Below are positions 146 to 44,310 of a stretch of DNA of 46,723 nucleotides, in pieces. How positions within the stretch are numbered: the stretch's first letter is position 1; every line of letters begins with the position of its first letter. A program made the translations under genes and the position numbers. A model generated the notes under the pieces. The model did no database searches. It was given only the letters and a program-made list of their open reading frames with translations, and was not told the DNA's origin. Source of the DNA: Octopus bimaculoides (lineage: Eukaryota); contig NC_068982.1 in the NCBI RefSeq assembly GCF_001194135.2, positions 3,494,010 to 3,540,732 of the forward strand. The letters run 5' to 3'.

Positions 146-178
<33 letters not shown>

Positions 179-233
179 CAATAACAACAACAACAACAAT
201 AACAACAACAACAACAACAAGAACAACAACAAC

Positions 234-418
234 AACATCGAAAAATACCTTAGGAATGAGAATCCAGGTTCGAAATTTCCCCAAGACACCTGAAGAAGGC
301 TGGAGGGTATATCAGCCGAAACGTTGTGTTAATAACAAACAAGATGAGGACAAATATCCGTCAAATGTAAATAATGTAAATAATGTACATAATTCCTCAT
401 CTCTTAAATATAGAACTG
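234..418 (+). mobile_element. Family A tail (hammerhead-bearing non-autonomous retroelement); head absent
   Basis: AACATCGAAAAATACCTTAGGAATGAG...CTGAAGAAGGCTGG...GAAACGTT...AAATATAGAACTG; the same sequence recurs 7 more times in the window. Confidence 0.85.
285..330 (+). ncRNA. Minimal type I hammerhead ribozyme (Penelope-like)
   Basis: Stem I GACAC(285-289)/GTGTT(326-330); CUGAAGA 290-296; extra A; stem II GGCTG(298-302)/CAGCC(313-317); GAAA 318-321; palindromic ACGT in place of stem III; predicted GUU cleavage after 325. Confidence 0.75.
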
Positions 419-3038: not shown

Positions 3039-3570
3039 TGTCTTTGCACAGCTTCTATCGCTGGAGATGTACTGCGGTGTCAGCTGTTCACCCCTTATTT
3101 TTCGAGCGGTTCCAAGCAGTGCTGTTTTCTGCAAGTGCTCCACCCTTATTGCAGCCCCTATTTGTTCCACCTACTTCTCGAAATTTTTACTCACTGTTCC
3201 CAGGGCTCCGACAATTATTGGTATTACTACCATCTTTTACAGCGACCACAACTGCTTAACCTCCCAAGCTAACCTGTCATATCTCTCGACTTTTCTTTCT
3301 TCCTTATCGCATACCTTGTTGTCAGCTGAGCATGCTATATCTGTGATCCAGCATCGATTGCTTTGTTTCTCAATTACCACTATGTCTGGTTTCCTATTCT
3401 CTATCTTATGGTTGCACTGAATCATAAAATCCCATAGGATTTTTGCATTATCATTTTCGATGATGCCGTCGGGTTTATGTTTGTACCACTTTTTTGCTCT
3501 GTCAAGTCCACACTTGTTGCACATTGTCCAGTGGACAATATTTGCTACACTTGATGCATAATGTCCAAAT
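3039..3570 (-). mobile_element. R4/Dong-like LINE, 5'-truncated, RLE domain
   Basis: VANIVHWTMCNKCGL..WYKHKPDG..KILWDFMIQ..RKPDIVV..DIAC..KEERKVERY..LW; IVGALG; LQKTALLGTARKIR. Flanked on both sides by (TTA)n/(CTA)n. Confidence 0.85.
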
Positions 3571-3640: not shown

Positions 3641-4235
3641 TCTTTTTATTACAGGATTTTTTTAGCGCTCCTGGAGTGTTGCATGTGTAGCAGGTTTACT
3701 ACCTGCAGCCTACGTTTCCATGTTATTCGTTCTTTTCAGCTATCTAAAACTTTCCTGATTATTCTGGCCGTACCAAGGAGGCAAACCTTTTGTAACAGTT
3801 CTACTGGGCACTCTATTCCAATTTCCTTTATATTCCACTTGATGCCTTCTCATACTGTTCCCAAGGACCCAACAATCGGGTTATTTCGTACTTAAAAGGG
3901 TTGTATTTATCTATCTTTTCGCCTTCCTTTTTATCTATTTATGGGTCAAAGTGGCACGCAACATCAACCATATAGCATATGTGGTGCATCTTGTCCACCA
4001 CCACTAGGTCCGGTCTGTTATGTTCTAGCACCTGATTTATTTTGGATTGGGAAATGCCAGAGGATTTTGCTAGTCTCCGACTCCGCCACTCTCTGCGGTT
4101 TGTGCTCATACCACATCTTGCCTCTCTCTAGCCCCCACTTTTCGCACAGTTTCCAATGAAGCACTTTCGCTACCTGATCGAATCACCACAACTTGTAGTG
4201 CTTTTGAGCGAGTCTAGGGCATTCGTTCCTTATAT
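3641..4235 (-). mobile_element. Second R4/Dong-like LINE, 5'-truncated, degenerate RLE domain
   Basis: Minus strand, with stops and frameshifts: HIRNECPRLAQKHYK..DQVAKVLHWKLCEKWGL..WYEHKP..KILW..HNRPDLVVVDK..VDVACHFD..IVGSLG..LLQKVCLLGTARIIRKVLDS*. The 3' end abuts (TTA)n at 3573-3640. Confidence 0.85.
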
Positions 4236-4395: not shown

Positions 4396-5578
4396 TTATA
4401 CGTAAAACAGGTTTGTGCTCAGTTTTTGCAGCTCAAATTCCATTCACAAGATATTGATCAAGCTGAGGTTGATGTAGAAGACACATGATGCACAAGATAC
4501 TGCAAAATGGGATCGAAAATTGAATCCCAATGTTACCAAATAAATTTCATAACAACGCAACCAAAAACCTTGCCAAAAGGGGTCAGGGTTTGACTTTTCG
4601 TCTTTAGTCTTCCATTGTGTTGCTTTATTGCTATGTTTTATGTTTAACCCCCATTCTCTTTCTTTATAATCATTCTCTTTTGTTCCTTCTCTTCATTCGC
4701 AACTGATATTCCGGCACCTTTTTCCTCACTTTCTCTATTATACTTATTTTGTCCTACAATTTCCAAGTATATCTTGCTTGATTCATTGCGAAACATTCTG
4801 CTGCGTTCCACCTGGTCTAAAAGTATTGCAGTGTACATATAACATACCGCGTATTAGCATGTTTCTTTCTGGTACGGTTACCATTTTTATATCATTCAAT
4901 TTTCAGCCTTTTATGAGAAGACACCAAAATATTAAAAGTATTGGTAATCTTCATATATTTCTCTTTTTAATGATATTCCTTCCATTCTAGTTTTTGAGAT
5001 GTATTTATGATTCACAACTTTAAATTTCATTTCCATTTATTGCACCCTATAATACTGCAATGCGTGCAAATATTTGAATATTTTCCCCCTTGAGGTATTC
5101 TTAATACATTCTTACTTAGCAATGGTGATTCCTTCCCAATGTCTTTGTTATATTCTCTTTATTACAAACATGACACACTTAACAAGTTTGAAACCATTTA
5201 TAAACATTACATGTTGGATTCCTTTATGTTTAAGCTGGGGTGGATAAGTTTGTTTGCTCGAAACATGTACAAGTGAGCGAATGAAACAGAAACGAAGAGA
5301 AATAGCGATAATTAATCTTCTTGTGTATTAATTCTTCTCATCTTAATGTGTCCTCACAAACTCTGACATGTCATACACCTAGCCAAGAACCCATTCTTGC
5401 CTCAATGAAGTTTTTCTTTTCCTATCATGAATGGCAAATATATTGAAGCGTTCTAGAATCTAAGGACAGTCTATCAAGTCATATTTTTGATGGTGGATTA
5501 ATCCCGCTCATATGGACTTCTCCGAACTGAGGCATCATCTTTTCTGTTTAGTATACTGTAGGTTTCTTCCGTATATAT

Positions 5579-5900
5579 GTTCTGAGTTCAAATCCCACCC
5601 AGGTCGACTTTGCTTTTCATTCTTTCGGGATCGATAAATTAAGTACCAGTTGCGTACTGGGGTCAATCTAATCGACTGGCCCTATCCCCAAAAGATTTGG
5701 GGCCTTGTACATAGAGTAGAAAAATATATACTGTAGGTCTCTTCCGTATTTACGTTCTGAGTTCAAATCCCCCCGAGGTCGACTTTTCTTTTCATCCTGT
5801 CGGGGTCGATAAGATTAAGTACGAGTTGATTCTTGGGGTCGATGTAATTGACTCACCCCCTCCCCTGAAATTATTAGCTTTGTGCCAAAAATAGTGACCA
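5579..5900 (+). mobile_element. Two tandem 5'-truncated family B SINEs
   Basis: GTTCTGAGTTCAAATCCC..GGTCGACTTT..TTTCAT..TCGGG.TCGATAA.TTAAGTAC occurs twice, 175 nt apart. Confidence 0.85.
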
Positions 5901-7291
5901 ATACACTGTAGGCCCCTGTTTTTCATGATACATTTTGGAATGCTTTCTATCCCTTCGAAGGTGTTTGTTATCCTATTTACATAAAGAAGTATATATATCA
6001 TCAACTATCAAACATAAAAAAGTGTTTTCTCTATCTGTGGCTCATAAAGGTGGTGTCTATAGTTGAAACTCTCTAATTCTTTCTATTTTATCTTTCTGTA
6101 AAGGAGACTAGTCTCGTTCGTCCCCTCTAAACAATATACCACCATGAGATATCTCTCACGTAATAGTAGTATATCACAATAAGATATTTCTAAACATGAG
6201 TACAGAGACGTGAATTACTTCAGCCTAAAACATTGAAATCCATCTTAGTCTATGGATTATCAATTCGTTCTTTTCTCGAGTCTTATCGTATTTTTTTTTC
6301 TTTTCCTTTTATTAAATATATGTTGTTTTACGTCGCTATGTCTTGAAATTCTATTCCCAGTAGACTCTTCTCTTGTCAGAAGAATGTTTAATATTCCAGT
6401 ATCGTTTTATTTACTCACATCTGGCACTTTATTTTCTTATTGTTCTTCAACACAATTCAGTTGTTGTTAGAGTTTTCTTTTGTTCCTAATCATCGCTTTA
6501 TTTACACTGTTTTATCTGCTGAATATATGTAATTATTTCCCCCGTCTTTGTCTTCAATTTTTCTTTTATTTCTGCTTTAACAGTATATACACCACTTTTG
6601 GTCTTAACAGTTTCAATGTAACACTTCATGAATCTTTTTTTTTATGTATTCTTTTTGAAAATTGGGTAAAGCTCTCATAGATCTTCTTTCAAATCTTTTA
6701 CTTGCTTTTCCTGTCTCGCTTTGCACCATAAACACTGATATGTTAATATTTTATTTTAAATTCAATCCCTAATGTTTCTGACAAGTGTACACTTCCATAA
6801 AACTGCGGAGCGTTAAGTGTCTGGGTCTATTTATTTATTACGCTTTTCATATTAAATTTTCTTCCAAAATTACAATTATCGTTTTCCAATGGTCCTATTT
6901 TATTCTATGCACTCAATGAAGTTTCGCAATGTGGAATGATTCTTTTAGTTTAGTATTTTCTGTTATATTCTGAATACTCTGCGAAATAAGTGTTCTTTCC
7001 TCCACGTTGTACAGAATTCTAAGTTCTCAGGTTTTACGTAAGTATTTGTCCGCATGATTTTTCAATGATTCCAAATGAACATTTTTATAGGACTATTTCT
7101 ATTATGAATACCCACATTCTGGTTATCTGGAGACAGTCTTCAAAGAAGAATTGGAAAAATGGAGAAATTCCATTATGTGTATATATATATGTATGTATAA
7201 TATAAATAATATATATATATATATGCATATGTACATACGTATACGTACACACTTACATCTATACGTATATATATATATATATGCATATGTG

Positions 7292-15462: not shown

Positions 15463-16530
15463 TGTGTCTGCAGGTACAGTATGTATATAACGAGGAAAAG
15501 AGATTTATATCCTATTTTGTAGAATTAACCATCCATATCTTTCTGAAGACAGTGCTTTATAGGGACACGCTCGTTCAAACAGCACCATTATCCGTACACA
15601 AACACAAGTACCAACACACCAAGGCCAAATACTTTAAAAGATATTCGTTTCTTTTCTCTGTCTATTATCTTTGTAATTGTTTATTTCTTTCCTATATTAC
15701 CTTTTTATTTCCATTGAAAAATTGTGTGAATCGTTCGTGTATTTAGAAAATTCTATGATTTATCGGAGAAGTAATACATCCATGAAAAGAATATTTGTTT
15801 TGTTTTGTCTTGTCGTTGTTGCTGTGTTTTTGTTTGTTTTTGTTTTTTTCGTGGTTGTTGCTCTGCTATTTTTTTCTGCTAAATTTTGTGACATTTTTTT
15901 TTTCTCATTTATTGTCTCCACAACTTTGCTAAAGATTTAACAGTTGTGAGAGAAAGTTAGTGGCGAGTGCTCTAGTGAGACGAAACTGTAATCGATTTGG
16001 TAAAAGTTCACTTCTCTGCGTTTAATGATCCTGAGAAAAGTATGAGCGTCACAACATTACATTTTCTTTTCCTATTAAACAATAAAGGTTTAATGATTTG
16101 TCGAATATAAAATCTAAAAATTTAAAGAAAAACTCTAAGAGATTATTGTTTATTCTTAATATATGTATATAGAATTTGTTGCTTAAGGATCTAGCTGATC
16201 TTGTGAACTGTTGGCACCTGCCTAAAGTATCATTTCTTTTAGACTAGGAATATTAGCCATGGAACATTCTCGCTGTCATCTACTCTATACGAGAGAAAAT
16301 AAGAACTGAAAGCTTGTTGCAAGCTCACATCAAAACTAAATCGAATTTGAATGATTGTCAGACATCTATGAGTCTTTACAATTAACGCACACGCGCGCAC
16401 ACATGCACACACACATATATGTGTTTAAACTAATACACCTTCTTGTTGCTTGTACACCTGTCTTCGTCTTTTGTTTTTCTATAAGTTTCAACTATACATG
16501 TATATATATAAATATTTTATAATTATATTC

Positions 16531-16658
16531 ATAATTATAACAAGGACTTGAATAGTGCCTCACCATGCACTGGAAAATAGACGTCTGGTAATAGTGTCTA
16601 TTTGAGGTCTATTTTTCAGTGCGTGGTGAGGCGCAAGCCAAGTCCTTGTTATAATTAT
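16531..16658. mobile_element. Palindromic MITE-like element
   Basis: 52-nt imperfect inverted arms, 16531-16582 and 16607-16658, starting ATAATTATAACAAGGACTTG. Confidence 0.75.
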
Positions 16659-16788
16659 TTATATAATTATGAAATATTTATAAAATTTACCTATGACGTT
16701 TTATTTCCGCGCTAACCACCTGGTAAAGATCATTAATGATTTTTACCCTTTATTATTATTATTATGTATATATATATATACATATATA

Positions 16789-18170: not shown

Positions 18171-18274
18171 CTATATTAACCAAAATGAAGTAGATTGACA
18201 AATTTATTTTTTGAACCAGTTGAAGACACAAGATGTCGAAATATCGTTCACTAGATAACAATGGCACTCTTCTT

Positions 18275-18342
<68 letters not shown>

Positions 18343-18346
<4 letters not shown>

Positions 18347-18490
18347 TCAAAAAATACCTTAGGAATGAGAACCCAGGTTCGAAATTTCCCCAAGATACCT
18401 GATGAAGGCTGGAGGGTATATCAGCCGAAACGTTGTGTTAACAACAAACAAGATGAGGACAAATATCCGTCAAATGTACATAATGTAAAT
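18343..18490 (+). mobile_element. Family A tail after (AAT)n 18276-18342; head absent; 3'-truncated
   Basis: Near-identical to 234-385. Confidence 0.85.
18394..18439 (+). ncRNA. Minimal hammerhead ribozyme with canonical CUGAUGA core
   Basis: GATAC-CTGATGA(18399-18405)-A-GGCTG..CAGCC-GAAA(18427-18430)-CGTT-GTGTT. Confidence 0.75.
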
Positions 18491-18568
18491 AAATATATGT
18501 CTATATATATATATGTGTGTGTGTGTGTATATACATGCATACATATATATATATTTATATACTACCTA

Positions 18569-19550: not shown

Positions 19551-19738
19551 CTGTTCTATATTTTAGAGATGAAGACTTCTGTAGATTATTTACATTATTT
19601 ACATTGACGATATGTTTACTCATGTCGTTTGTTGTTATCACAATGTTTCGGCTGATTTGCTCTCCAGCCTTCATCAGGTGTCCTGGTGGAATTTTGAACC
19701 CAACCCTGGGTTCTCATTCCTAAAGTATTTTTTGCTGA

Positions 19739-19772
<34 letters not shown>

Positions 19773-20059
19773 TTATGTTTGACTTTTGTTTTGCATTTGT
19801 ACAAGTTGGATCCAAGTCTCACCCAGAGACCTCAAGAGACAACAAGTTAGAAGTTCATGTAGGTGTTATGCCTAGGGTACCATATATTTGGATTTGTATA
19901 TTATTATTATTATTATTATTATTATCACTATTATTATTATTTATTTATTTATTCAAGGTACTGCCTGGAACTCAACTCGCAGTCTTGGGGTTAGTAGCCC
20001 GCGCTCTTAACCATTACGCTATATGCCCGTGGGCTACTAACCCCAAGATTGCAAGTTCA
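19551..20059 (-). mobile_element. Full family A element with a nested insertion in its linker and a short fold-back
   Basis: Tail 19551-19741 (CTGATGA at 19677-19671); (TTA)n; insert 19774-19898; (TTA)n; tRNA-like head 19953-20034; then a plus-strand head fragment 20031-20059. Confidence 0.85.
19774..19898 (-). mobile_element. Short 3' fragment of a probable R4/Dong-like LINE nested in (TTA)n
   Basis: Flanked on both sides by (TTA)n. Its TGAGGTC..GTGAGACTTG..TACAAA resembles the 3' UTR at 11568-11605. No clear protein motif. Confidence 0.45.
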
Positions 20060-20060
20060 G

Positions 20061-20181
20061 TGCCTTACCTAGTGTTGTTAGGTTCCGCACACATTTTACG
20101 CCGTGTACTCTCCATTAGATGAGGACCTGCTGTGACCTTAGGGTCAAGGGATGACCCCGGTTCAGCAGAAGACAACGGATC
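20061..20181 (+). mobile_element. R4/Dong-like LINE 3' end
   Basis: LVLLGSAHILRRVLSIR* (stop 20120-20122), followed by a TGAGGAC..TGTGACC 3' UTR. Confidence 0.7.
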
Positions 20182-29994: not shown

Positions 29995-30188
29995 TTCTTT
30001 TATTCTTTTGTTTCAGTCATTTGACTGCGGCCATGCTGGAGCACCGCCTTTAGTCGAACAAATCAACCCCAGGACTTATTCTTTGTAAGCCTAGTACTTA
30101 TTCTATCGGTCTTTTTGCCGAACCGCTAAGTTACGGGGACGTAAACACACCACCATCGGTTGTCAAGCAATGGTGGAGGGACAAACAG

Positions 30189-30219
<31 letters not shown>

Positions 30220-30391
30220 CGTATATACGACGGGCTTCTTTCAGTTTCCGTCTACCAAATCCATTCACAAGGCTTTGATCGGCCCGAGGCTATAGTAGAA
30301 GACATTTGCCCAAGGTGCCACGCAGTGAGACTGAACCCGGAACCATGTGGTTGATAAGTAAGCCACTTACCATACACCCACTCCTGCGCCT
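29995..30391 (-). mobile_element. tRNA-derived SINE family C with internal (TA)/(TG) tract
   Basis: Head AGGCGCAGGAGTGG.TGT.TGGTAAG; body CTACTATAGCCTCGGGCC; 3' GGCGGTGCTCCAGCATGGCCGCAGTC. Confidence 0.9.
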
Positions 30392-30529
30392 TGCAGATAT
30401 ATTTTAACAANNNNNNNNNNNNNNNNNNNNNNNNNNNNNNNNNNNNNNNNNNNNNNNNNNNNNNNNNNNNNNNNNNNNNNNNNNNNNNNNNNNNNNNNNN
30501 NNNNNNNNNNNNNNNNNNNNNNNNNNNNN

Positions 30530-30730
30530 TAATTTATTCTTTTATTCTTTTGTTTCAGTCATTTGACTGCGGCCATGCTGGAGCACCGCCTTTAGTCGAA
30601 CAAATCAACCCCAGGACTTATTCTTTGTAAGCCTAGTACTTATTCTATCGGTCTTTTTGCCGAACCGCTAAGTTACGGGGACGTAAACACACCACCATCG
30701 GTTGTCAAGCAATGGTGGAGGGACAAACAG

Positions 30731-30761
<31 letters not shown>

Positions 30762-30952
30762 CGTATATACGACGGGCTTCTTTCAGTTTCCGTCTACCAA
30801 ATCCATTCACAAGGCTTTGATCGGCCCGAGGCTATAGTAGAAGACATTTGCCCAAGGTGCCACGCAGTGAGACTGAACCCGGAACCATGTGGTTGATAAG
30901 TAAGCCACTTACCATACACCCACTCCTGCGCCTTGCAGATATATTTTAACAA
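30530..30952 (-). repeat. Exact duplicate of 29988-30410 across gap 30411-30529 (probable assembly overlap)
   Basis: Offset 542. ORFs 30160 and 30702 are identical. Confidence 0.85.
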
Positions 30953-31520
30953 CAAAATCTTACATGGACCACCCCCAAGGGTCATACAGACTCCCAAGGG
31001 CCATATGAACCCTGGTTGGAAACAGCTACTCTAACTGCTCTTTCGAAGACTTGTCGAAGCCCATCCTTTGTCCGTTTCTTGATAAATTCGTCAGGAATAG
31101 CGGCACTGCATTCTGTGACTCACCGCTTCCGTTCCTTATTTTCTAAGAAATGGCTGGTAACGATCATCTCCTTGTGACTATGAGTCGCTGTTAATGGAGT
31201 TGTCGTCATTTAAATTCGTCTTTCGCTTTTCGAGACGCTCAGTGTTTATAATTGTGTCTTTTCAATTCTTATCATTCTTTCTCTTTACTTTTATTTAATC
31301 CAGAGTTCATAGAATCTGATGCGGCGTATTCGTTGCTACCACCTTTTTATCGGTGTCCCTTTCACTGCTCCACACCTAGCTATATTGAAGCAGTAAAAGT
31401 AAAGTTCATTCTCGGGTCATATAGGAATCATAAGGGCCGGTTTCGCGCTTCCCATGGTGTATATATTCCCCGCCTGGACGGGATGCCCGTCCGTCTCTTT
31501 ATTACGCATTTTTGCCACTA

Positions 31521-31738
31521 CAGTTCTATATTTAAGAGATGAGGAATTATGTACATTATTTACATTATTTACATTTGACGGATATTTGTCCTCATCTTGT
31601 TTGTTGTTAACACAACGTTTCGGCTGATATACCCTCCAGCCTTCGTCAAATGTCTTGGGGAAATTCCAAACCTCGGTCCTCATTCCTAAGGTATTTCCCG
31701 ATGTTGTTGTTGTTATTATTATTATTATTATTATTATC

Positions 31739-31769
<31 letters not shown>

Positions 31770-31846
31770 TCACTGACTGGAATCGAACTCGGAATCTTAG
31801 GGTTAGTAGCCCGCACTCTTACCCACTACGCCATATGCCCGAGGGC
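31521..31846 (-). mobile_element. Full family A element
   Basis: Tail 31521-31700 with core TTGACGA (31649-31643), (TTA)n/(TTG)n linker, head 31765-31846. Confidence 0.9.
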
Positions 31847-31890
31847 AAATATGGGGTGTATTTATAAGCACTAAAATTCACTCCATAATT

Positions 31891-32111
31891 GCCCACGGGC
31901 ATATGGCGTAGTGGGTAAGAGTGCGGGCTACTAACCCTAAGATTCCGAGTTCAATTCCAGTCAGTGACCATAATAATAATAATAAGGAATGAGAACCCAG
32001 GTTCGAAATTTCCCCCAAGATACCTGATGAAGGCTGGAGGGTATATCAGCCAAAACAATGTGTTAACAACAAACAAGATGAAGACAAATATCCGTCAAAT
32101 GTAAATAATGT
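31891..32111 (+). mobile_element. Family A element, inverted partner of 31521-31846
   Basis: Head 31891-31969, short (AAT)n, tail with CTGATGA at 32024-32030 but AAAA for GAAA; 3'-truncated. Confidence 0.9.
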
Positions 32112-32114
32112 CAT

Positions 32115-32255
32115 TTTTACCAGTTTGATGGACTGGTGCATCGTGAAATGAAGTGTTTGCTCAAGATTTCAACGCATCACCCGGTCCAAGGATCGAAACT
32201 GCACATCTTACGATCATGTGTCCAGTACCCTAACCCCTAAGCCACCCTCCTCCAC
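32115..32255 (-). mobile_element. Degenerate tRNA/CORE-type SINE (family G) 5' part
   Basis: Reverse match to the head of 33207-33330. Confidence 0.55.
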
Positions 32256-32283
32256 AGTTGAAGCAGTAGCAAATAAATAAATA

Positions 32284-32490
32284 TTATAGGCACAAGGCCT
32301 GAAATTTCGGGGAGGAGAGTAGTCGATTACATCGACCCCAATGTTTTACTGGTACTTAATTTATTGACCCTGAAAGGATGAAAGACAAAGTCAACCTCGG
32401 CGGGATTTGAACTCAGAACGTAGCGGCAGAGGAAATACCGTTAGACATTTCATCCGATGTACTTAACGATTCTGCCAGATCGCCGCCTTA
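32284..32490 (-). mobile_element. Full-length family B SINE
   Basis: Head, B-box and central domain as at 20990-21223. Confidence 0.9.
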
Positions 32491-32529
32491 ATAAAATGCA
32501 TATTAACTAAAAAAAATATGTGTATAAGT

Positions 32530-33594: not shown

Positions 33595-33693
33595 CAGTTC
33601 TATATTTAAGAGATGAGGAATTATGTACATATGCCCACGGGCATATGGCGTAGTGGTTAAGAGTGCAGGTTACTAACCCCAAGATTCCGAGTT
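33595..33693. mobile_element. Family A junction fragment: inverted 3' terminus fused to the tRNA-like head
   Basis: 33595-33630 is the reverse complement of the last 36 nt. 33631-33693 is the plus-strand head, truncated at GAGTT. Confidence 0.85.
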
Positions 33694-34769: not shown

Positions 34770-35300
34770 AACTAGCCAGGTAATTGTCACTGCAATCAAT
34801 ACGGATTGCACCTGTAAGGCGCTTGGAAATGATAAGATACCCGATTTCTCTTTAAATTATAAAAGATGTGTATAACAACAGCTTTGAGTTATCACAAGGA
34901 ACAGAAACAAAATCAACAGCCGACAGGTTACTGAAGGGAAACAATAACAATTCCCAAAACAACAACATCAGGCCGATAACTGTAATATATAAGCGATCAT
35001 AGATATACTTTCCAGCAGAAACATAACAACATCTTACAAGAAAAGCAGAAACGAAGTCGGGAAAATATACGAAGATCTAATGATAAACGAAACAGTTGCC
35101 GAAGTCAATGGAACAGCAAAGCGTCTAAGCATGGCTTTCATTGATTATCGCAAAGCCTTTCACATTCCTGTATATGAGAGACACTCTATACAAATAAAAA
35201 GCCCCTAATTCTAAGGAAACTCATTAAACTACACTATTTCAAAAAGGAAAGCAAAATAAGAATTTTTGCAGGGACGCCCAACTCTCGTCACTCTTCTATC
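34770..35300 (+). pseudogene. R4/Dong-like reverse transcriptase relic
   Basis: KALGNDKIPDF (34816), NIRPIT (34964), NILQEKQKR, AKRLSMAFIDYRKAF (to 35160), and a degenerate QGD-like segment. Confidence 0.7.
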
Positions 35301-35324
35301 TAACCCTAACCCTAACCCTAACCC
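35300..35324 (+). repeat. Interstitial telomere-like (TAACCC)4
   Basis: Four exact units, 35301-35324. Confidence 0.85.
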
Positions 35325-35399
35325 CCACCCGATTCACAAATCTGTCGAAACAAACCAAAATCTTGGAACAATTTACATGTAAATTTATCATCATGGTGT

Positions 35400-35670
35400 T
35401 GGCAAACTAACCCCATACATATCTTGGTTAGAACAATATTATTTGGTCCGGATTCTGCTTTCAGCATCACAACCACAAGGCTTGACTTGAATATTAACAT
35501 CCAGAAAACCAAAGTCGTCTATCAACCAAGCGTTGACGCGACCAATATACGAAGGCCAAAAGCTGCTAGATGTCAGTTGTTTTATCTGTCTGAGAAGCAC
35601 TATCAGTAGAGATTTAGAGTTCAGTTCTTCGGGAAGAGAGCGTTGGATGAACAAAGCCAGTTGGCGTTCG

Positions 35671-41227: not shown

Positions 41228-41738
41228 TCTCTCACAGTATAGAACGTATGTGACCTTTAAATGGTATCCCAGCAAGTGTTTGAGCTATAAATACAATCGA
41301 TCCCCTTTTTCTCAAGAATCGATTACCTTGATACGTATCCATCCGATCGGCTGAACCAGTTTTCTCTTCTTTTCTTGTAAACATCACTCAACCAAATTTC
41401 ACTCACAAGCTTTCGATCGATTCTTGGTTGTAATCGAAGGCATTTGGCCAAGGTCGTGCACGGTAGACTCAAACTGGAATGTATGTTGCCGAGAAATGAA
41501 CTTGTAAACCACAGACACGTGCTTGCCTCGCTTGCTGCCTCTTTATCGCTGTTCTGTTTCTGTACCAACGATACTTTACTCACAAAGTAACAAAGGTTAT
41601 ATACCTATAAATGGGTACCAAAAACAAAAGTAGGGGGCCTATATTGCGAATGTAGGGGTGGGGCACGAAATCCGTGTTTGGTGTACTTGAAACATTGGGC
41701 GCAATTTCAGTACCATTATCTCCTTTCTGAGGTGGGGG

Positions 41739-41953
41739 GTGGCGAGCTGGCAGAATCGTTAGCACGCCGGACGAAATGTTTGGCGGTATTTCGACTGCCG
41801 CTACGTTCTGAATTCAAATTCCGTCTTTCCAAAGGATGACTTTGCCTTTCATCCTTTCGAGGTCGATAAATTAAGTACCAGTTGAGTACTGAGGTCGATG
41901 TAACCGATTTAACCCCCCCCCCCTAGAATTTCACGCTTATAGTAGAAAGGATT
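41739..41953 (+). mobile_element. Family B SINE
   Basis: Head, B-box, central domain, AGTAGAAAGGATT end. Confidence 0.9.
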
Positions 41954-42139
41954 TTCTGGAATTAAAGCTACAATCATAATCTTTCAGTTGCATTAATTTA
42001 AGCTAGAGTAAGATGAAATCCAATGAATACCAGTCATATGCTGGGGTTAATTTAGTGAAATATTCTCAATTCCAAAGTTTCTTGAGTCAATATTAGATAT
42101 TCTTACTTAAAAAAGAATTGAATTGCTTGTTTAATCGTT

Positions 42140-42353
42140 GGTTTCAAATATTTGCACAAGGCCAGCAATTTCGAGGCAGGGATTAAGTCGATTATATCGA
42201 CCCCAGTGTTCAACTGGTACTTATTATATCGACCCCCGAAGTATGAAAGGTAAAGTCGACCTCGGTGGAATTTGAACTCAGAACGTGAAGACGGACGAAA
42301 TGCCGCTCAGCCTGTTGCTCGGCGTGCTAACGATTCTGCCAGTCCACCATCTT
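42140..42353 (-). mobile_element. Family B SINE
   Basis: Full-length, convergent with 41739-41953. Confidence 0.9.
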
Positions 42354-43149
42354 AACTAACATGTTTAATTTTTGCCCGCCACGTCGTGCTTTCTTATATT
42401 CTTATAATACAAGAGAAGCAGTAAAACATAACAGCGTATGTCTGCATGTGTGTATACATGAGTGGTTTCGTGACGGTATAAACATTGTTTTACACGCGAC
42501 TGCTCCGTTTATTTTCCTATCAATCGTTTAAACGAAGAACAAGGACTTCGTTCTTGCTCGAATAGGTCACGTAACATAACATTCTTTATATTACAACGTC
42601 ATAATATTACTCATTGCAAATATCACCTCACTTCACCTCACTAAACGCCATGCTTCAATTTATTAACTACAGCTTGTCTTCAATTGAAATAATGATATTT
42701 TCTTAGTTCAAAACTATTTATGTAACTGGTGGGAGATTTCGTCGATTGAGTATAATATCCCTCCAGACCATCACTGCTATTTCTATTGAGAATTTCTTTT
42801 TAAAAAAACCAATATGATTGCGTTAAATAACAAGCTTCTTCAAAACATATTGCCATTAAAAGAAAGTAGAGAGATGTCTGAAAATTATTGGAGGATTATA
42901 ATTTAAAAGATAATAACATTGTGATATTTTGTTGAGGCTGAGGTGCATGGAATGCCATTGTCTCTTCTCGCAGTCACCATTTTAATCGCAGACGATGTGG
43001 TGAAAGCGAAAACTGGTCAAAAACAAAAGAAAGGAAGAAGGAATATAATCGAAGAAGCAGAGTGGAAGGAGACAGAATTTATTGAACGAAATGAATTATT
43101 ATTATTATTATTATTTTGTATTGAATGATGGGAAAATAAAAGAAATGCA

Positions 43150-43921: not shown

Positions 43922-44160
43922 TTGACGGATATTTGTCCTCATCCTGTTTGTTTTTAACACAACGTTTCGGCTGATATATCCTCCAGCCTTCATCAGCTGT
44001 CTTCAGGAAATTTCGAACCTAGGTTCTCATTCCTAAGGTATTTTTCGATGTTATTATTATTATTGTTGTTATTATTATTCAGATCACTGCCTAGAATCGA
44101 ACTCGGAATCTTGGGGTTAGTAGCCCGCACTCTTAACCACTACGCCATGTGCCCGTGGGC
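43922..44160 (-). mobile_element. Family A element (head + linker + tail, 3'-truncated)
   Basis: CTGATGA at 43996-43990, linker 44051-44078, head 44079-44160. Confidence 0.9.
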
Positions 44161-44310
44161 ATAATAATAATCGAAAAATACCTGAGGAATGAAAACCCAG
44201 GTTCGAAATTCCCCCAAGACACCTGAAGAAGGCTGGAGGGTATATCAGCCGAAACGTTGTCTTAACAGCAAACAAGATGAGGACAAATATCCGTCAAATG
44301 TAAATAATGT
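44161..44310 (+). mobile_element. Family A linker + tail, directly fused in inverted orientation to the previous copy
   Basis: ATAATAATAATCGAAAAATACC..CTGAAGA (44223-44229)..GAAACGTT..AATAATGT. Confidence 0.9.

Follow-up and report, generated by a model that had tools for sequence, protein, structure and literature searches.

A short octopus repeat with a Pol III promoter-type head and a Penelope-type hammerhead tail: a probable SINE mobilised by a Penelope enzyme

Introduction

Short interspersed nuclear elements (SINEs) are the textbook parasites of long interspersed nuclear elements (LINEs). A pair of inverted repeats in the genome of Octopus bimaculoides raises the question of whether a SINE can instead be copied by the enzyme of a Penelope-like element (PLE). 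The pair occupies positions 31521-32111 of a 46,723-nt stretch of contig NC_068982.1 (assembly GCF_001194135.2, positions 3,494,010 to 3,540,732 of the forward strand), hereafter the window, to which all coordinates refer. It is made of two head-to-head copies, together called U1, of a dispersed repeat that we call family A. In each copy a head with the internal promoter boxes of RNA polymerase III (Pol III) is connected by an (AAT)n linker to a tail that contains a hammerhead ribozyme motif. Such a family bears on how PLEs single out their own RNA, on the reason for their hammerheads and on the way in which their inverted or tandem insertions are built.

A sequence-only reading of the window had proposed a Pol III SINE that captured the terminal repeat of a PLE. 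The head with its A and B boxes and the PLE-class hammerhead of that proposal are borne out, whereas true derivation of the head from a tRNA fails the cloverleaf tests. Since family A combines a minimal PLE hammerhead with a PLE-like mode of insertion, it is probably a SINE that owes its copying to a Penelope enzyme and not to a LINE enzyme.

A repeat family of two joined modules

The eight pieces that had been grouped as one unit with a head, an (AAT)n linker and a tail of ~185 nt do form a single repeat family, as judged by blastn self-search and alignments, and their coordinates were exact or correct to within a few bases. When the two U1 arms are used as queries, the window returns every one of these pieces and otherwise only (AAT)n microsatellites; its self-search contains no longer element matching the tail. 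The head measures 79 nt, and the linker consists of ~5 to >30 units of (AAT)n or (AAC)n. A typical element is ~280-330 nt long, the units observed span ~220-480 nt, and copies diverge from their own consensus by 1.6-13.8%. Family A is thus a short, non-coding, dispersed and multi-copy repeat, with eight pieces per 46.7 kb. TRF detected no tandem array of it in the window, where copies are single or inverted.

Head, linker and tail follow one another in one order and on one strand in four copies, three on the minus strand (31521-31846, 19553-20033 and 43922-44159) and one on the plus strand (31891-32111). Head and tail are joined in four of the five head-bearing copies, and one head fragment is tail-less (33634-33693). 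Three further tails (174-418, 18276-18492 and 44170-44310) are headless, and each begins within the linker. These modules, like the class of the ribozyme motif, its geometry and the insertion scars described below, can be read directly in the DNA (Table 1).

Two details of single copies or regions deserve mention. Copy 19553-20033, whose 3' end adjoins a (TA)n run, is the only one to hold ~130 nt of unrelated sequence (19776-19900) inside its (AAT)n linker; this sequence has no other match in the window and may have inserted secondarily or been captured by a template switch. The early part of the tail (e.g. 18370-18385) contains a second B-box-like string, CCCAGGTTCGAAATTTCC, which hints that the 5' portion of the tail may descend from another tRNA-like sequence.

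A minimal hammerhead of the Penelope class

The sequence-only reading had placed a hammerhead core in the tail, and it is there: CUGAUGA-A-GGCUGG...UCAGCC-GAA-ACGU-U, on the sense strand. The full consensus, GACAC-CUGAUGA-A-GGCUGG-AGGGUAUA-UCAGCC-GAA-ACGU-U followed by GUGUU, has a helix I of 5 bp (GACAC/GUGUU), a long helix II with a G10.1-C11.1 pair, a bulged A, and the tetramer ACGU followed by U17. The stems of helix II are invariant in all seven copies. Minimal hammerheads of metazoan PLEs are marked by traits that emerged outside the search descriptor of the authors who described them (Cervera and de la Pena), including G10.1-C11.1, a long helix II, a helix I of 4-5 bp and a palindromic 15.1-16.1 (PMC4209133). 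Every one of these traits is present in the family-A consensus. A descriptor composed from the published traits picks out the two intact copies and has no match in 300 simulated windows.

Class membership was assessed with a covariance model, R1, trained solely on the hammerheads of seven genuine PLE loci from other animals, which avoids circularity. A PLE query built from conserved motifs retrieved 5762 PLE proteins, and the seven loci were taken from these (beetle, ladybird and other ENA assemblies). A minimal hammerhead lies 10-310 nt downstream of the stop codon of the open reading frame (ORF) for reverse transcriptase (RT) and GIY-YIG endonuclease (EN) in seven of seven loci. In all of them GAAAC comes after the hammerhead core (GAAACGUC in six loci and GAAACUUGUU in locus L004); a Tenebrio PLE copy has CCGAAGA in place of CUGANGA. 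Model R1 matches all seven family-A tails, at 17.8 to 38.3 bits and with E-values from 5.5e-9 to 6.8e-3 (scores of the individual copies in Table 1), against a background in the window of <=11 bits with one exception at 17.5 bits. The motif is real and of the PLE class, because a model trained on PLEs only matches the seven tails above background. The decayed copies differ by ordinary mutations: U for C3, A for G12, and an ACGU that has lost its CpG.

The exception just mentioned, at 18211-18252 on the plus strand (17.5 bits, E=0.009), lies in unique-looking sequence just 5' of copy 18276-18492. It could be the decayed hammerhead of an older PLE-type insertion, or a chance match; PLEs tend to insert beside one another.

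The Rfam hammerhead models do not detect family A, which is no surprise for a motif that has no helix III: types I, II, III, HH9 and HH10 gave no match at gathering score window-wide and none at E<=10 in 31400-32300. No Rfam family of any kind reached its gathering score in the window, and microRNA-like matches at E<=10 near U1 were rejected as hairpin artefacts of the inverted repeat. A scan of public metagenome and viral contigs with the hammerhead pattern returned no match.

Two forms of 3' end and their distance from the ribozyme

Four copies terminate at ...CTCATCTCT(T/A)AAATATAGAAC(T/A)G within unrelated flanks (ends at 418, 19553, 31521 and 33595), and this long form reads ...ATAGAAC(T/A)G at its very end. 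The other three stop ~36-41 nt sooner, near ...AAATAATGT. A common 3' end without poly(A), as proposed for the family, therefore applies to four copies in differing flanks and not to the three that end earlier; poly(A) is missing from every copy. Measured from the cleavage site, the terminus lies at 52 nt in the short form and at 93 nt in the long form. The corresponding distances are 49, 53, 55 and 86 nt in the four PLE loci whose ends could be defined from inverted pairs, again without poly(A).

Insertion scars and the inverted dimer U1

Insertions of endonuclease-encoding (EN+) PLEs have a recognisable appearance. They are strongly 5'-truncated, have at their 5' end a second, 5'-truncated copy in inverted orientation and show palindromes at the inverted junction, which have been interpreted as traces of self-priming; an optional 'tail' of ~31 bp (30-40 bp) is found at one end only, target-site duplications (TSDs) are 8-10 bp long or absent, and microsatellites are preferred as targets (PMC3846280, PMC8557442). 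Judged by its copies in the window, family A reproduces the PLE-type list: an inverted 5' partner, a palindrome, a one-arm extension, no poly(A) and, at U1, a putative TSD. An inverted family-A segment adjoins the 5' end in four of four independent head-bearing insertions, versus none of five head-bearing copies of a control SINE, another family abundant in the window (13 copies). The 5' end itself is a near-palindrome, GCCCACGGGC. Four copies carry the terminal extension of ~36-41 nt and three lack it; by analogy it may correspond to the published PLE 'tail'. Head-to-head inverted pairs also occur in four of the seven control PLE loci, which were picked at random (L001, L002, L003 and L007); the arms of L001 are 99% identical over 2.1 kb.

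In U1 an inverted-repeat search defines a near-perfect hairpin with arms at 31752-31863 and 31874-31985, 94% complementary and 10 nt apart. Both arms share diagnostic variants (GTGGGTAAG, CCCTAAG and CCAGTCAG) that are not found in other copies, the 36-41-nt extension is on the left arm only, and the whole is flanked at both ends by a putative 11-14-bp TSD (local alignment score 8.5, p~0.01 versus random flank pairs). Taken together, the hairpin arms, the shared variants, the one-arm extension and the common TSD argue for U1 being a single insertion event. L1-style twin priming was rejected as the cause of the inversion, since the arms duplicate the same regions and do not partition one RNA.

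The head and its Pol III promoter boxes

The head opens with GCCCACGGGCATATGGCGTAGTGG and carries an A box, TGGCGTAGTGG, at +14 and a B box, (A)GTTCGATTCC, at +58. With the B box in the form AGTTCGATTCC, the two boxes are spaced as in a tRNA and fit the type-2 consensus of Pol III promoters. A search for both together, as TGGCNNAGTGG-N(25-45)-GTTCRANNCC, gives 2 matches in the window versus 0.00 expected from 100 shuffles, and alignments show that older copies have 1-2 substitutions in the boxes. Public metagenome contigs scanned with the head pattern contained no match. The head may resemble tRNA-Arg(UCU), a likeness that we treat as a lead and not as a result.

A proposed route of mobilisation

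The reading that we favour, and hold to be moderately probable, is that family A is a two-module non-autonomous retroelement of the octopus, with a Pol III head and a mimic of the PLE 3' end, that is copied by a PLE. For its more specific version we regard the chances as evenly balanced: family A would then be a genuine Pol III-transcribed SINE with a tRNA-type promoter, its partner would be a PLE and not a LINE, and the hammerhead-bearing end, equivalent to a pseudo long terminal repeat (pseudo-LTR), would act as the module recognised in trans. The head would be an internal Pol III promoter kept from a decayed tRNA-type gene. The tail would mimic the 3' (pseudo-LTR) end of a canonical endonuclease-encoding PLE, with its type I hammerhead devoid of helix III and its defined terminus.

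From these parts we infer Pol III transcription and dependence on a PLE, in the following order. Transcription would start from the head and run into the flank. The RT/GIY-YIG EN protein of an octopus PLE would recognise the hammerhead-bearing 3' module in trans, and the RNA so selected would be copied by target-primed reverse transcription. Self-priming or template switching would then often take place at the palindromic 5' end and give rise to head-to-head, variably 5'-truncated partners and the optional one-arm extension of ~36-41 nt; this last process is taken from descriptions of PLEs, while its products are seen in the sequence. Any cleavage would need a second hammerhead copy pairing through the ACGU palindrome, as in PLEs, and the hammerhead may serve as a recognition module more readily than as an efficient processing site. 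Octopus genomes hold ~30 recently active Penelope families (PMC13282606), which could supply potential partners.

Evidence against this reading and rival explanations

A number of observations weigh against the PLE-copied, Pol III-driven element that we favour. The sample is small, eight pieces in one 47-kb window. A tblastn search with the PLE query found no PLE ORF in the window, none of the 5762 PLE proteins from the motif-based query was identifiable as octopus, and the searches revealed no autonomous PLE with this tail. Of the six or so insertion units, U1 alone has a convincing TSD. The 3' ends vary, being long in four copies and short or early in three. The 9-nt tandem motif in which they fall, (GTAAATAAT)n, lends itself to an alternative reading as a LINE-style repeat tail. 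The hammerhead core is conserved no better than the rest of the tail (4/98 changes versus ~6%), which is to be expected of decaying copies. Nor is the hammerhead fold the minimum-free-energy structure of the tail: in the minimum-free-energy fold of the monomer helix II is formed and helix I is absent. The tail folds no better than its shuffles (z = -1.7), and thermodynamic support for the fold was rejected as not significant.

The head adds to these difficulties. ARAGORN reported no tRNA in it with the default threshold or with thresholds lowered to 90% and 80%, and the head at 31888-31972 drew no match from the Rfam tRNA model. On the head at 44090-44147 the same model scored 11.5 bits (E=6; cut-off 29), a sub-threshold match whose alignment keeps the register of the D, anticodon and T arms. 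A 'tRNA-Ala' called by ARAGORN at a 70% threshold was rejected as out of register. The head fails to fold into a tRNA; because the cloverleaf tests all failed, its derivation from a tRNA rests on the promoter boxes and the sub-threshold alignment, and the description 'tRNA-like' given by the sequence-only reading is justified for the promoter part of the head, with its A and B boxes at tRNA spacing, but not for a cloverleaf. The same reading had noted that the sense strand has no TTTT and could hence be read throughout by Pol III. This is true of seven of seven copies, but 17% of random 281-nt stretches of the window also lack TTTT (p~0.17, not significant). The missing TTTT is for that reason merely compatible with Pol III read-through, and was rejected as evidence for Pol III.

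Since the hammerhead and the insertion scars are of PLE type, they would also suit a non-autonomous PLE derivative (a solo pseudo-LTR end, similar to a retrozyme) that is mobilised by a PLE and on which the tRNA-like head is a passenger with no working promoter, transcription coming from read-through or from PLE-type promoters. Captured sequence of unrelated origin can be moved in trans by PLE pseudo-LTRs alone (PMC3846280), and non-LTR retrozymes have been proposed to be non-autonomous derivatives of PLEs (bioRxiv 10.64898/2026.07.22.740005). A passenger head would also agree with the three of seven tails that are headless, with the loss of the cloverleaf and with the non-significance of the missing TTTT. 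We nevertheless think it unlikely, given that younger copies keep the A and B boxes exactly at promoter spacing, that the head is always 5' of the hammerhead and on the same strand, and that the headless copies all begin within the linker, as 5' truncation of a head-first transcript predicts. It is quite improbable, in our judgement, that family A is an ordinary tRNA SINE mobilised by a LINE, with a tail that represents a LINE 3' untranslated region ending in the 9-nt tandem motif and a hammerhead that is incidental or a captured fossil. Such an origin would account for the short-form 3' ends inside that motif, most known SINEs use LINE tails (PMC4824008), and LINE reverse-transcriptase fragments occur in the window (e.g. 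34993-35606). It fits poorly, however, with PLE-only model scores of up to 38 bits (E=5.5e-9), with a ribozyme-to-terminus distance that agrees with PLEs, with the missing poly(A) and with a tail common to no other sequence in the window; self-BLAST gave no match between the tail and the LINE fragments 34993-35606. The inverted segments at four of four head-bearing insertions, against none of five in the control SINE, duplicate the same regions, unlike the products of L1 twin priming.

Two further explanations question whether the structures are what they seem. Head and tail might be separate elements, brought together when a short PLE-derived element inserted into the (AAT)n tail of a minimal tRNA SINE; PLEs do favour microsatellite targets (PMC8557442), the modules are joined by an (AAT)n of variable length, and tails without heads occur. 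An identical order and strand of head, linker and tail at four separate loci make a nested insertion very improbable, as do the 3' sides of the tails, which are never (AAT)n, the failure to see any tail-less head with (AAT)n, and the presence in both U1 arms of head and tail with shared variants inside one enclosing TSD. We give hardly any credence to the inverted structures being mis-assemblies of a draft scaffold with N gaps. The window has nine N runs, and tandem and inverted PLE structures are known to disturb short-read assemblies (PMC8557442), but the N runs touch none of the four junctions, the arms are 6-10% diverged, a TSD flanks U1 and the four junctions differ in structure.

Coordinates and neighbouring elements

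Table 1. Position of family-A copies, their parts, junctions and motifs in the window. Bit scores and E-values are those of model R1.
Feature	Coordinates	Strand	Support
Full-length copy, long form; U1 left arm	31521..31846	-	blastn, alignments
Parts of left arm (approximate)	tail 31521-31703, (AAT)n linker 31704-31767, head 31768-31846	-	
Full-head copy, short linker, short-form tail; U1 right arm	31891..32111	+	blastn, alignments
Parts of right arm (approximate)	head 31891-31969, short linker 31970-31985, tail 31986-32111 ending ...AAATAATGT	+	
U1 junction between heads; inverted repeat continues ~17 nt past each head, 10-nt loop 31864-31873	31847..31890	.	
Minimal hammerhead, left arm; C3-to-U in core	31607..31655	-	27.0 bits, E=1.2e-5
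Minimal hammerhead, right arm, decayed: G12-to-A, ACGU to ACAA	32018..32066	+	17.8 bits, E=0.0068
Pol III A box 31823-31833 and B box 31779-31789 (AGTTCGATTCC), left arm	31779..31833	-	pattern search
Pol III A box 31904-31914 (TGGCGTAGTGG) and B box 31948-31958, right arm	31904..31958	+	pattern search
Putative TSD, left copy, CATTTTTGCCA then CTA	31507..31517	+	flank local alignment
Putative TSD, right copy, CATTTTTACCA then GTT; adjoins short-form 3' end	32112..32122	+	flank local alignment
Headless copy, long form; linker from ~144; intact hammerhead 284-332	174..418	+	38.3 bits, E=5.5e-9
Headless copy, linker and early-ending tail; intact hammerhead 18393-18441	18276..18492	+	34.8 bits
Full-length copy, long form, ~130 extra nt in linker; hammerhead 19635-19683	19553..20033	-	25.8 bits
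Lone inverted last 36 nt of long-form tail, directly 5' of head	33595..33630	-	100% match over 36 nt
Head fragment, broken off within B box	33634..33693	+	
Head, linker and tail, most diverged copy; hammerhead 43954-44002	43922..44159	-	29.2 bits
Headless 5'-truncated short-form copy, inverted, adjoining 5' end of 43922-44159; hammerhead 44217-44265	44170..44310	+	31.9 bits
5' junction with full inverted copy	31846 / 31891		
5' junction with headless inverted copy	44159 / 44170		
5' junction with inverted 34-nt piece (head nt ~29-62), GGGC microhomology	20033 / 20031..20064	+	
5' junction with isolated inverted last 36 nt of tail	33634 / 33595-33630		

The window is AT-rich (34.5% GC) and rich in microsatellites. 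Directly 3' of U1 lie two other SINE-like repeats, at 32112-32260 (minus strand) and 32262-32500. One of them has a tRNA-like head of another kind, whose B box is GTTTCGATCC. The other belongs to the 13-copy control-SINE family, copies of which also stand in direct tandem as a pair at 5555-5912 and tail to tail as a pair at 41738-42363. The LINE fragments at 34993-35606 (plus strand) are recognised by reverse-transcriptase motifs (...AFIDYRKAF..., ...NIQKTKV...). Related open frames at 3240-3569 and 3942-4127, both on the minus strand (...KILWDF...RKPDIVV...DIA...), resemble the C-terminal region of a retrotransposon protein; the sole database relative of the former, at 58% identity, is on a TARA Oceans metagenome scaffold (L008), a contig that contains no family-A copy. 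Identical open frames at 30054-30351 and 30596-30893, in ~300 bp of identical DNA flanking the N run 30411-30529, are likely a scaffolding duplication artefact or a recent tandem duplication. A compact inverted repeat at 16507-16682, with 79-nt arms that are 87% complementary and 18 nt apart and with AT-rich termini, looks like a DNA-transposon relic of the miniature inverted-repeat (MITE) type, unrelated to family A.

Searched against protein databases, the open frame of the tail found two proteins only, both from Octopus bimaculoides. One is an uncharacterised protein of 51 aa. The second is a predicted dystrobrevin-beta isoform X1 (P0002, GCA_001194135.2), whose N-terminus, ...GEGWRVYQPKCCVNNKQDEDKYPS..., is a translated family-A tail including the hammerhead region. 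Because this N-terminus translates the tail, at least one family-A copy has, according to the gene model, been exonised as an alternative first exon, and family-A tails would in this way reach mRNAs.

Significance

If family A is indeed copied by a PLE, PLEs would provide a third route of SINE mobilisation. The family would be a natural and abundant substrate for learning how PLE RT/GIY-YIG enzymes choose and copy their templates. It would also point to a minimal set of cis-elements for PLE retrotransposition, in which a PLE 3' module as the only PLE part, under Pol III control, leads to insertions with PLE scars. Schistosome Sm-alpha, animal retrozymes and the minimal hammerheads of PLEs, which are now treated separately, would become linked, and part of the large 'unclassified SINE' fraction of octopus genomes would have to be reassigned.

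Comparison with known systems

In the accessible literature, with Repbase and Dfam outside our scope, we found no description of this octopus family or of a tRNA-headed SINE with a PLE tail; family A may already be named in Repbase or Dfam without the present interpretation. Its parts have counterparts in several known systems, each of which differs from it in other respects.

Classical tRNA-derived SINEs with LINE-derived tails, such as the octopus OR1, OR2 and OK, MetaSINEs and CORE-SINEs, share with family A a head with A and B boxes, a short length, 5'-truncated copies, a high density and a place in the same genome. Unlike them, family A has a PLE-like and not a LINE-like tail, no poly(A) and no clear simple-repeat tail, and inverted 5' junctions are usual. 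Canonical PLEs agree with family A in the pseudo-LTR hammerhead, which comprises CUGANGA, one unpaired nucleotide, G10.1-C11.1, a long helix II, GAA, ACGU, H and a short helix I (Cervera & de la Pena 2014). They further share a ribozyme 50-90 nt from a poly(A)-less 3' end, head-to-head inversion and an optional 3' extension. In contrast to PLEs, family A is without an RT/GIY-YIG ORF, is only ~280-330 nt long, and starts with Pol III A and B boxes in place of a pseudo-LTR promoter.

Metazoan non-LTR retrozymes are, like family A, non-coding hammerhead repeats, of ~170-400 nt, and have been proposed to depend on PLEs or to derive from them as non-autonomous elements (PMC7229834, PMC7761336, bioRxiv 10.64898/2026.07.22.740005). 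They are tandem repeats, each unit mostly with a canonical type I hammerhead, and give rise to circular RNAs, whereas family A is not tandem. The words 'tRNA', 'Pol III' and 'promoter' are absent from the text of the retrozyme paper, while family A has a Pol III head.

The hammerhead of the schistosome Sm-alpha element is of the canonical type I. That of family A is minimal, lacks helix III and has a palindromic ACGU. According to a published summary, Sm-alpha and Sj-alpha of Schistosoma are otherwise similar to family A in being short, non-coding, multi-copy retroposons with a Pol III-type promoter and a sense-strand hammerhead; they often form tandem arrays from which cleavage frees monomers, whereas family A is dispersed or inverted (PMC6765202). 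The association of a Pol III promoter with a hammerhead is accordingly known from Sm-alpha and Sj-alpha, and PLE-dependent hammerhead repeats are known from retrozymes. New with respect to both are the minimal PLE ribozyme, the dispersed or inverted copies, the head with A and B boxes, and the presence of PLE insertion scars on an element the size of a SINE.

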